Positions 23,099-35,299 of a DNA stretch of 64,000 bases are shown piece by piece. Below the pieces are notes generated by a model that saw nothing but the letters and a program-made list of their open reading frames with translations, did no database searches and was not told the DNA's origin. Within the stretch, counting starts at the first letter, position 1; every line of letters starts with the position of its first letter. Location of the stretch: NCBI GenBank assembly GCA_964035545.1, contig OZ037773.1, positions 4,059,751 through 4,123,750 of the forward strand, read 5' to 3'. The stretch is from Bugula neritina. Taxonomy: Eukaryota > Animalia > Bryozoa. The position numbers and the translations under genes were made by a program.

Positions 23099-26000
23099 CT
23101 AACATTTGTTACAAGATTTTTTACACTTTAACTTCATGTAATCAGGCCTGATCTGACAATAGCCTTTTTCTGCCCATCTCCCACAATACTTGTTGTCATC
23201 AACACAGCTTGAACTGATTACTGGTTTCGTGACTTCTTGATTATTGCAGAAGTTACAGGATTTAGCGCAGTTGCTTTTCATGTACCCAATATAGACGTGG
23301 CAGCGATTTGCTCCAGCCCATGACTTGCAGTATGAACTCTTGTCTGTACACGCTGCCTTACTATCTGAGTCAGCACCAGAGTCACAGAGCTGACATGTAC
23401 TAGCACAATTGATCTTCATGTAGTCCTTTCTGGTGGCACATCTCCCAGCTTTTTTCCAAAGGCTGCAGAACTTGCTTTGGTCTTTGCACTGCTGAGATAC
23501 GCCGGTGGCTGCTTTAGCTGTAGTTGTAAGGGGTGCTGGCGTGGAGGCCAACGTGGTAGTTGGTAGAGCAGTAATAGGCAGCTGTCGAGGTGCGTTGTAT
23601 TGCGTCAAATGATCTGCTGCCAAACACGTCTTACAACTGGCAGGACAGAGAGACTTCATGACCTCGGCTCGAGTCTGGCACAGCCCGGCACCAGCCCACA
23701 CCGTGCAGTAGCTCTTACTGTCTTCACACTTGACTGGTTTAAGTTCAACAGAAGTGCTTTCCCGCACTTCTGCTGCTGCCAAGTGCCTAGCTGATTCGCT
23801 ATGACATTGGTCACATGACTTGCTACAGTATCGCGTCATATAGTCAGGTCGGCGAGTGCAGTATCCAGACTCCGCCCACTGTGAGCATTGCTGTTTCTTG
23901 TCAATACAGTTTCCTGAAGTTTTGTCTTGAGCAATGACTTTAACTTTCTCTGTCACCAAGTTTACAGTAGTTGTCTGAATGTAGTTGATTTTGTCTTCTG
24001 TAAGAATTCTATTAGATATTGCTGAGCATTTATCTACAAAAATATTAATATTTGCTCTTTGACCTAATCTAATTTAAAATGAAAACCATTTTGTCAGTTG
24101 TCTTATTAAAGTCACTGCTTTGTTATTACTTATAGAAACAACTTATAATTTTCTATTAAGCAAAAATATCTATTTTTACAATTTTTAGAAGTTTTTAGAG
24201 CATGCTCCAAGCAAACAGCAAGAGTTATGTAGTAAAATGTTTCAGCTGTAAACCCTTTAGTAATGTCTCTTACCACATGAAGCTGGGCAGTTGTCTTTCA
24301 TAAACACAGGCTTGAGGGAGCACATCTTGTGACTAGCCCAAGTTCTGCAATACTCATGCTTATTGGTACACGCACTCGTCACCTCTTTCTGAACTCTAAT
24401 GCTGCACTTGTTACAGGACACGGGGCAATTCTCGTTCATGTATTTTTCTTTAGCTTTGCAGTAGCCATAAACTTGCCATATCATGCAGTACCTGAAAAAA
24501 AGATGAAAGTTTAGCAGTCAGAACTTTGAATCAAATCTGCAAAGTTGAAAACAATGGCGTATATTCACGAAAGTAATTTTTGGGGTGACCCACAAGTTGA
24601 AAATGATATAAGCATAAAAAGCTTCTGATGATCCATACTCTTATATTTCAATAAATTAATACTTCTAGCCTAATTTGTTGTACATTATTTTATATAATAG
24701 TAGAGTAATATAATAAAGCACATTAATATGCTACTGATGACATTATTAGCTGACTTAAAGTTAAAATAGTGGCAGATCTCTGAGTTAAGAAAAGTAACAG
24801 GTACTAAATACTAAACGCCTAATTTTACAGCATTTATTGTAAAAAAACACTTTGACAAGCTAAAATTTCTGAATTCTACCAACCTGTAGTTGAAAAGAAA
24901 TGAAGAATTGTAAGAGTAGTAAACACTACATCCCATAATGTCTAAATAAGTTACAGCTACAAATACTGTCTAGAGCCGATAACTTGAATGATTATATACA
25001 AATATTATACAACTAAGCAAATTCTAGTTAGTTAGACTTTTGTTTCAGTTGGTGACTCACTCGCTCTGGTCTTTGCACTTAGCTTCAGTTCTACTTGCTG
25101 TTATAGGTTTGGACTGTCCACACAAACCACATGACTTTGGACATTTCAGATTCATGTAGTCTTTCCTGTCAATACATTTGTTCTCATCTGCCCATCGGCT
25201 GCAATATTCATTGCGGTCCTGTGTGAAAAGATAAGATGTACTAAGAATAATTTATCTAATGCTACAAATGTTTGTTGATTTGAACAACATTAGGTTAAGC
25301 CAACAGTTGAATGATTATAAGAAATAACTAATATATGCATGAAGAGAAATAATTATGCATAATTCCATATGCTCTCTATAAAAAACACTTTTCATGGCAA
25401 ACTATATTTTAAATGATTTGTATAAAAAAAATCCTGTAAAACCTTTGTTAAACTTTGAATTCTTGCCAGTTGCTATAACTTTGCAGAGCGCATGCAGTTT
25501 TCAAATATCAAATTTTTGTTTATAATAAGAATATTTTAACTTTTATTCAATCATATCATACCCATCCTAAATGGTTACAGGCACCTTATTTTGTTGCATC
25601 AACACCATGAATAACTAACCTTACAGACACCTGCTTTAGTGACAGCTGCCTGATCATTTTGAGTTCTATCTCCTCCCTGTGCTGTGACACCTGATGGGCA
25701 CCTGTTGCAGCTTGCCGCACAGCTTTTATGCATGTAGTCTGGCCTTTTACTGCACTGACCTAAGAAAAAATGAATCAGAATGGCACATAAATATATAATG
25801 GTACCAAATTAAGAATAAATACTTATGATGGAAAGAAAATAAACATCAATTACTTCTAAAGTTAGGTTGTGTAACATTTTTCAGGTCGAACTTAGAATTT
25901 ACTAAAAATATGCTAAAAATGTCGATTCAGTTTCAGCTGATTAAAAAAAATTAATTCTCTTAACTTTTTTATGCAAAATACTTATTGGGGAGCATACTTT

Positions 26001-35000: not shown

Positions 35001-35299
35001 AACAAACAAATGAAAGTATTTCGATCAGCCTACATTGTATATAAAAATATTTCTATTCATTTATTTATGTACAACTTTCACATAACATTTTATGAGTCTA
35101 TAAGGCCTTTTGTACACACATCGTATGCAGAAATGAATTACGGTTCTGCATTGAGTTCCCATCTTCTAATGCTATTAAGGGAGGATATCTTTCCTCCCCT
35201 AAAGCTATACATTACTGTCTATAAGGCTAACTGTTGGTCCACTTGAAATTCAAACACTTTCATACCTGAGGTGATTAAGTGGTTGGTTCTCATCGCCAT
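23099..35299 (-). CDS. Secreted protein: signal peptide + degenerate beta-propeller-like domain + 10 ShKT (ShK toxin-like) domains, ~857 aa
   Basis: Twelve exons, all GT-AG and in phase: 35266-35299, 34602-34753, 32645-32831, 28922-29097, 28181-28306, 27227-27428, 26951-26999, 26077-26273, 25620-25759, 25061-25218, 24274-24491 and 23099-24033 (total 2574 nt). N-terminus is MAMRTNHLITSVVLLGVVISLTHT. Ten six-cysteine repeats of the form C-x-D-x4-C-x2-W-A-x3-C...M-x3-C-x2-S-C-x2-C. Confidence 0.88.
29188..29487. repeat. Diverged two-copy tandem duplication (~140-160 bp) in an intron
   Basis: CTGCAAGTATTTCAT..CTGATATTAAAGGCA..TTTTCTAT..AAATTTTAT..AACTTTTATT occurs at ~29188 and again at ~29326. 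Confidence 0.8.
29861..30078 (-). mobile_element. tRNA-derived SINE with a central domain resembling the MetaSINE core
   Basis: The minus strand reads GAGCAGCCGTGGTCTAGGGG (A-box-like)...GGGTTCGAACC (B box), then TGGTGATGTTCGGAAGAGCATCCAGTCATAATTGCTC. Flanked by an imperfect 17-bp direct repeat, ACTGTAACGCTGTTTTA (29844-29860) / ACTGTAATACTGTTATA (30079-30095). Other copies occur in the window. Confidence 0.85.
30350..30450 (+). mobile_element. Truncated SINE copy in opposite orientation
   Basis: TAGTGGTTAGAG...TTGCTGATGTCAAGAAAAGTATCTGGTCATAATTGCTCCTGTGCC matches the SINE core. Confidence 0.7.
32390..32600. repeat. Intronic degenerate minisatellite (AATGCATTGATACAATAAT / AATGCATT)
   Basis: Tandem copies begin ~45 bp after the donor at 32644. 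Confidence 0.85.

Follow-up and report, generated by a model that had tools for sequence, protein, structure and literature searches.

How does a propeller domain of a bacterial kind come to stand at the head of an animal gene, in front of a long row of ShKT domains, and what might such a protein do? The question is raised by a locus on the minus strand (35299 to 23099) of a 64-kilobase window of the genome of the bryozoan Bugula neritina (contig OZ037773.1); the window is the whole stretch of 64,000 nucleotides that was analysed, and coordinates are positions within it. A first-pass annotation had described the locus as a secreted fusion of a degenerate bacterial-type propeller with ten ShKT domains. 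Our analysis makes it highly probable that this is a real, expressed, single-copy animal gene encoding a predicted-secreted protein of 867 amino acids, in which a degenerate propeller of what we call the DWEDIA family (residues ~41-292) is followed by ten ShKT domains, and which would have a non-catalytic binding or scaffold role.

The gene was rebuilt from open frames and splice signals as 12 exons, all with AG/GT borders and compatible phases (Table 1). They splice to a frame of 2604 nucleotides that reads with standard stop codons and ends in a TAG terminator (23101-23099). Exons 1-7 are small (34 to 202 nucleotides) and cysteine-poor, and exons 8-12 carry the ShKT units. Joined in phase, the exons yield the architecture that had been proposed, namely a predicted signal peptide, a domain that is not rich in cysteine and ten ShKT domains, and the earlier description of the N-terminal domain as ‘now intronised’ agrees with the six introns that split it. 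The same domain contains two N-glycosylation sequons. The window is AT-rich (about 32% guanine plus cytosine, G + C) and lies on a contig of >9.6 megabases (Mb) in an assembly of 216 Mb, in which exons 3 and 6 each occur in a single copy.

Transcripts connect the two parts of the gene. Three runs (X1-X3, of which X2 and X3 are RNA-Seq by library record) were compared with positions 23100-29099, covering exons 4-12. Their contigs are 90-95% alike to the assembly and confined to exons, and they skip eight introns with CT..AC ends, which are GT..AG on the gene strand (joints 24033/24274, 24491/25061, 25218/25620, 25759/26077, 26951/26303, 26999/27227, 27428/28181 and 28306/28922). Exons 12 to 6 lie on one contig of 1420 nucleotides, and exons 8, 7, 6 and 5 are joined on another; a third contig links exon 5 to exon 4 and extends for about 250 nucleotides upstream of 29097. 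The supposed transcript from the N-terminal exons into the ShKT exons was therefore found, with single contigs bridging both (X2 record 6 and X3 record 11). The DNA run X4, in which 94% of the words of the window are present, shows no splicing.

These contigs bear directly on the possibility of an artefact, in which the N-terminal and ShKT exons would be two genes, or the N-terminal part bacterial contamination. For exons 4-12 this is refuted: single RNA contigs join propeller and ShKT exons, the propeller is interrupted by GT-AG introns, and a six-frame scan of the whole assembly with a profile of the bacterial family, run with a positive control, gave no match and no intact bacterial-type copy. 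The scan is silent at the known locus because the exons are too divergent when taken one by one. Overall, we consider an artefact extremely improbable.

The contigs of X1-X3 share one set of differences from the assembly, which, at 90-95% likeness, means that their source is a close relative or divergent lineage and not the sequenced individual. Forty differences from this relative were listed, 39 in exon 12 and 1 in exon 6. All cysteines are retained among them, and the excess of synonymous (26) over non-synonymous changes (14) points to purifying selection at the ShKT end. The splice that had been placed at 26951/26273 is real, but its acceptor was misplaced, as the RNA puts the start of exon 8 at 26303, 30 nucleotides away, with the phase kept. 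This acceptor (TAG) lies at 26304/26303, and the contigs extend as far as 26305, with two anomalous letters where the exons meet. The junction 32645/29097 is a prediction at the edge of the compared stretch.

Two further observations concern the transcripts. Between 26273 and 26304 there are two in-phase acceptors 30 nucleotides apart. The upstream acceptor is used in the RNA of the relative, and splicing to the downstream acceptor would omit ten residues (QERSRSVDHR). Furthermore, one RNA run bears the organism label of the genome run, yet the RNA runs differ by about 5-10% from the assembly, and since these differences are shared, transcriptomes and genome appear to represent separate lineages, or cryptic species that share a name.

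The spliced product contains ten complete six-cysteine ShKT patterns (C..C..C..C...C..C, ~35-37 amino acids). Four of the ten are split by introns and become whole only after splicing, which supports the gene model. Membership of the ShKT family is confirmed by the Pfam ShK model (PF01549), which gives seven matching stretches on the two exons containing complete units (exon 8, E 2.8e-10; exon 12, E 2e-38, 5 stretches). A stretch rich in threonine and proline between units 7 and 8 is probably O-glycosylated.

Potassium-channel toxins of the ShK type are marked by a Lys-Tyr dyad, and a D/G-Y-M-type loop is seen in non-toxin ShKT domains. Here, a Lys-Tyr pair stands at the dyad position only in unit 4, and nine of the ten units have a D/G-Y-M-type loop. 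Dibasic KR/RR sites are absent from the unit borders throughout the 867-residue product. It is thus neither a short peptide nor a recognisably cleavable precursor, and as a whole lacks the dyad of a ShK-type channel toxin. The first ShKT domains to be recognised came from channel toxins of sea anemones, and venoms contain secreted ShKT peptides (PMC6409789). That origin would fit a venom or toxin precursor, whose array is cleaved to single channel-blocking peptides with the propeller as carrier or propeptide, but the missing sites, the long and partly mucin-like linkers and the prevalence of the D/G-Y-M-type loop over the dyad make such a precursor very unlikely.

Known partners of ShKT domains are astacin (M12) metalloproteases, CAP domains, tyrosinases, peroxidases and prolyl-4-hydroxylases, and proteins with multiple ShKT domains occur in nematodes and cnidarians (PMC6409789). 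The product described here resembles these multi-domain proteins in being secreted, by prediction, and in its C-terminal tandem of six-cysteine units, partly split by introns. It differs from them in its propeller, which is absent from the listed partners, and in the length of its array. Within the collection of papers searched, none mentions ShKT together with SdiA-regulated or with a beta-propeller, in line with the earlier remark that the combination was unfamiliar.

What, then, is the N-terminal domain? Its relatives are found in a family of bacterial propellers that we sampled with a degenerate DNA pattern for WEDIA..GDIGDN, so that DWEDIA and GDIGDN are invariant by construction. The search of bacterial genomes gave at least 120 loci (L005-L124) in at least 16 phyla, and the family is present in 30 of the 81 sampled Bacteroidota genomes. 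Its members are open frames of about 290-350 amino acids with signal or lipoprotein N-termini, as in Chryseolinea sp. H1M3-3 (L080:6516-7421:+) and Solimonas sp. SE-A11 (L056). They share the motifs ExSG, HNDSG, DWEDIA, GDIGDN, DAE, QGE and SE, the series listed in the first-pass annotation, and also TK. No Pfam or NCBIfam model describes them; one member reaches the Phytase-like model at 19 bits, below the cut-off, and none matches the SdiA-regulated family (PF06977) above the cut-off. A PF06977 profile cross-matches the family weakly (median 17 bits), and the family is a structural sister of E. coli YjiK and Pfam SdiA-regulated. An AlphaFold2 model of one bacterial member, built from a 60-sequence alignment, is all-beta with a predicted local distance difference test (pLDDT) score of 93.5, and Foldseek assigns it the propeller fold; its approximately 22 strands suggest five blades. 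In the Bacteroidota genomes that carry it, the family often occurs as tandem pairs and, in the ESM Atlas, the domain is also found at the C-terminus of some PE-PGRS proteins of Actinomycetota.

The animal domain matches this family along its whole length. A locally built profile of 88 bacterial members and 311 positions scores 40-44 bits against the spliced animal protein (E 5e-15, as a single test), with profile positions 58-308 of the 311 aligned collinearly to animal residues 42-292; the best of 2000 shuffled controls reached 7.7 bits. A comparison of the animal domain with the bacterial family by hhalign gave a probability of 97.2% (E 3.5e-11, 259 columns). A collinear match of this extent places the domain in the DWEDIA/GDIGDN family. 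The earlier claim that it follows the motif order of a bacterial propeller is thus upheld, for a domain of ~250 amino acids (residues ~41-292). Identity to the bacterial members is at most 24%.

The suggested placement near SdiA-regulated and phytase-like proteins holds in so far as the DWEDIA family is a sister of SdiA-regulated, and fails as regards membership of the Pfam family itself. When the five larger N-domain exons were compared singly with Pfam, only chance-level matches appeared, and none to PF06977 even at E up to 10. A six-frame genome scan with PF06977 (cut-off 21 bits) found nothing at the locus and one chance match elsewhere, and a local profile of 13 PF06977 members gave 3.1 bits against the animal domain. 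Set beside the match to the bacterial DWEDIA profile, this low score assigns the animal domain to the DWEDIA family. At 0.88-0.92, the ESM features of exon 6 offer a lead, and no more, towards SdiA-regulated, NHL and phytase-like clusters, and exon 3 gave weak matches (0.81) to mixed beta-rich families in the ESM Atlas. Sequence searches of the PDB yielded nothing with an exon-6 profile and, with the bacterial profile, blade-level matches to designed WD40-like proteins only.

Compared with the bacterial family, the animal domain is alike in length and in motif order, and the signal-peptide-like N-terminus, judged by eye on the predicted exon 1, would be a further likeness. With a subset of members the domain also shares a cysteine hairpin after WEDIA. 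It differs in that the animal gene has introns and ten ShKT domains, whereas the bacterial proteins are mostly single-domain. The C-terminal domain of E. coli YjiK (PDB 3qqz, PF06977) is the known structure to which the exon-6 features point; unlike it, the animal domain has no PF06977 match by exon-wise Pfam, genome scan or local profile. The bacterial and plant-type glutaminyl cyclases (PDB 3mbr, 3nok and 2iwa) are candidates for a further neighbouring system.

A second organism carries a related gene. Exon 6 (67 amino acids) was searched against 1.84 billion protein representatives, in libraries that are mostly prokaryotic, and of the seven matches one is real: P0007, an 84-residue fragment with 33% identity. 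The other six were rejected as repeat artefacts. The source of P0007 is a contig (L004) of 1737 base pairs with 40% G + C, on which the exon homologous to exon 6 has an acceptor and a donor in the same phases. This exon is followed, about 600 base pairs downstream, by a ShKT exon that splices to it in phase and whose closest counterpart in the animal array is unit 1. The last-blade exon of L004 aligns with the bacterial profile at its last-blade end and likewise lacks QGE and SE. Since L004 shares the last-blade exon, a ShKT exon and the loss of the site, fusion and site loss predate the split of the two organisms; the second organism is distantly related and the fusion old. The ShKT exon of L004 (1184-1366) ends with a GT donor, and the gene continues, probably with further ShKT exons, beyond the contig end. 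Word searches, one with exon 3 and one with the alignment of the two exon-6 sequences, found nothing new, and a scan of Joint Genome Institute (JGI) metagenomes with the exon-6 alignment found no relative.

The animal copy has lost most of what is conserved in bacteria. Among columns at least 75% conserved in the bacterial family, it keeps 4 of 24 polar ones and 9 of 26 that are hydrophobic, glycine or proline. HNDSG and GDN are partly deleted, DWEDIA has become TWNSLA, DAE has become AAA, QGE has become LIQ and SE has become LQ. Within the motifs, W, A and I survive, and D, E, N, H and K do not, so that the domain lacks the invariant acidic and polar signature of its family. The claim that nearly all acidic residues had been replaced is borne out, with 20 of the 24 conserved polar columns changed or deleted. 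In bacteria, the conserved residues probably bind a metal or ligand atop the central channel; as almost every invariant acidic or polar residue is replaced, the animal copy would be unable to do what bacteria do with them. The term ‘pseudo-enzyme’ in the first-pass annotation goes beyond the data, since the bacterial family has no known activity and an enzymatic ancestor is an assumption.

It is also conceivable that the propeller is still active, and binds a ligand or catalyses through a rebuilt site. An open frame kept in two strains and a homologue kept in the second organism would be compatible with this, as would the conserved positions still present (W89, R122, E125-P126 and D214). The extent of the loss makes it unlikely, however: the 20 altered columns include all of HNDSG, the D, E and D of DWEDIA, GD.GDN, the E of DAE, QGE and SE, and the second animal also lacks QGE and SE.

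Two histories could have brought the domain into animals. One is an ancient horizontal transfer into the ancestor of both animals, followed by the gain of introns and a eukaryotic signal peptide, loss of the acidic site and fusion to ShKT domains. The known range of the family is bacterial, a pattern that favours transfer: it is widespread in the phyla and Bacteroidota genomes given above, its tree largely tracks bacterial phyla, and all the nearest ESM Atlas clusters are 100% bacterial. The 1.84-billion search with the last-blade exon led to one other eukaryote-like sequence only, and the 216-Mb genome has the single copy and no intact one. In addition, 13 of the 119 bacterial members, most of them Myxococcota or Gemmatimonadota, have a Cys-x-Cys hairpin after WEDIA (the animal exon 3 encodes a Cys97-Cys105 pair), and Myxococcota are the nearest rows to the animal in both trees. 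Against this, the branch leading to the animal shows saturation, at 4.9-7.6 changes per site, and falls in no supported clade, long-branch attraction to the outgroup was seen, the searched protein libraries are prokaryote-dominated and were queried with one exon, and the hairpin could be convergent. Whether or not the PF06977 outgroup was included, the tree gave the animal row no position with support and hence points to no particular donor. The transfer put forward in the first-pass annotation is thus favoured by the bacterial range of the family but not established; we give it an even chance.

The other history is vertical descent, in which the domain would be an old eukaryotic propeller that shares deep ancestry with the bacterial family and has been lost or gone unrecognised elsewhere. 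The extreme divergence, the six introns within the domain, the intron phases common to two distant animals and the poor sampling of eukaryotes in the searched resources all speak for it. The match, however, is specific to one bacterial family, and not to propellers generally or to PF06977, and no further eukaryotic relative appeared in the 1.84-billion search, the word searches or the metagenome scan. We regard vertical descent as rather unlikely. A fuller version of the transfer account is offered tentatively, at somewhat less than even chances: a gene for a secreted bacterial propeller was taken up by a common ancestor of two or more distantly related invertebrates, possibly from a Myxococcota-like donor with the cysteine hairpin, and this gene was intronised, had its acidic site erased and was fused to ShKT domains, giving a lineage-restricted extracellular family whose propeller recognises a new, animal-relevant target.

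How might the protein work? In the proposal that we prefer, the propeller would descend from the bacterial DWEDIA family of secreted or lipoprotein-type proteins of ~300 amino acids and would have kept part of the hydrophobic core. In the extracellular space, the protein would bind partners or serve as a scaffold without being a catalyst, as part of mucus, of matrix or of surface defence, with the propeller as a recognition module and the ShKT array as a string of protein-interaction modules. This reading is drawn from the predicted secretion signal, the mucin-like linker and the long, non-toxin-type ShKT array without processing sites.

Several points weigh against it. Exons 1-3 (35299-32645) are predicted from splice signals, phase and collinearity with the bacterial profile, and the signal peptide (MAMRTNH followed by LITSVVLLGVVISL) is a prediction judged by eye. 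The propeller fold of the animal domain is proposed from homology, and its putative loss of function is read from the loss of motifs. The contrast in retention between polar and core columns is modest (17% and 35%), and the signal of selection covers the ShKT end, with one listed difference in the propeller part. Finally, the extracellular binding or scaffold role is one that the protein may have, going by features of its sequence.

Table 1. Exons of the propeller-ShKT gene, in order of transcription.
Feature	Position	Strand	Content	Basis
Exon 1	35266..35299	-	ATG and signal-peptide start (MAMRTNHLITS); GT donor, phase 1	Predicted from sequence
Exon 2	34602..34753	-	Remainder of signal peptide and propeller start; blade-1 ExSG reads QVST	Predicted, AG/GT and phase
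Exon 3	32645..32831	-	Degenerate DWEDIA..GDIGDN..YRxxEP, reading TWNSLA..AKIS..LRFEEP	Predicted, splice signals and profile alignment
Exon 4	28922..29097	-	Propeller; DAE to AAA	RNA joint 28306/28922 and profile alignment
Exon 5	28181..28306	-	Propeller; GGDISPDG to SMDWNADS	RNA joints 28306/28922 and 27428/28181
Exon 6	27227..27428	-	Last blade; QGEAI to LIQAI, SEG to LQG	RNA joints
Exon 7	26951..26999	-	Micro-exon of 49 nucleotides, propeller-ShKT linker	Present in spliced contigs of X1-X3
Exon 8	26077..26303	-	Linker, ShKT 1, first half of ShKT 2	RNA and Pfam ShK
Exon 9	25620..25759	-	Second half of ShKT 2, linker, first Cys of ShKT 3	RNA joints and six-Cys patterns
Exon 10	25061..25218	-	ShKT 3 and start of ShKT 4	RNA joints and six-Cys patterns
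Exon 11	24274..24491	-	Rest of ShKT 4, most of ShKT 5	RNA joints and six-Cys patterns
Exon 12	23099..24033	-	End of ShKT 5, ShKT 6-10, Thr/Pro-rich linker, TAG stop	RNA joint and Pfam

At the start of the gene, residues 41-62, encoded by exon 2, align with the first motif block of the bacterial profile. Two candidates for coding sequence in this region were rejected. A possible exon 1 at 34870-34840 (ATG..GT) fits no phase, and a leucine-rich stretch upstream of 34753 is preceded by an in-frame TAA and represents the polypyrimidine tract of the acceptor. About 1 kilobase upstream of exon 1, a trinucleotide microsatellite (36206-36409) gives 13 consecutive cysteine codons in a minus-strand open frame. 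Elsewhere in the window, long open frames of short periodic repeats at 928-2207 and 53407-53922 (with translations such as YTHYTLHTLYTT) are probably tandem repeats and not genes.

The gene extends the range of ShKT partners by a domain not previously described, and provides an RNA-supported case of a bacterial-type extracellular domain that has been domesticated, intronised and stripped of its conserved site in an animal gene. It also draws attention to a common family of bacterial propellers that lies outside the family databases, even though it is present in about a third of the sampled Bacteroidota, in at least 16 phyla and at the C-termini of some PE-PGRS proteins. If the transfer is true, the intact bacterial and degenerate animal members would form a system in which to probe what the conserved acidic site does and what has replaced it.

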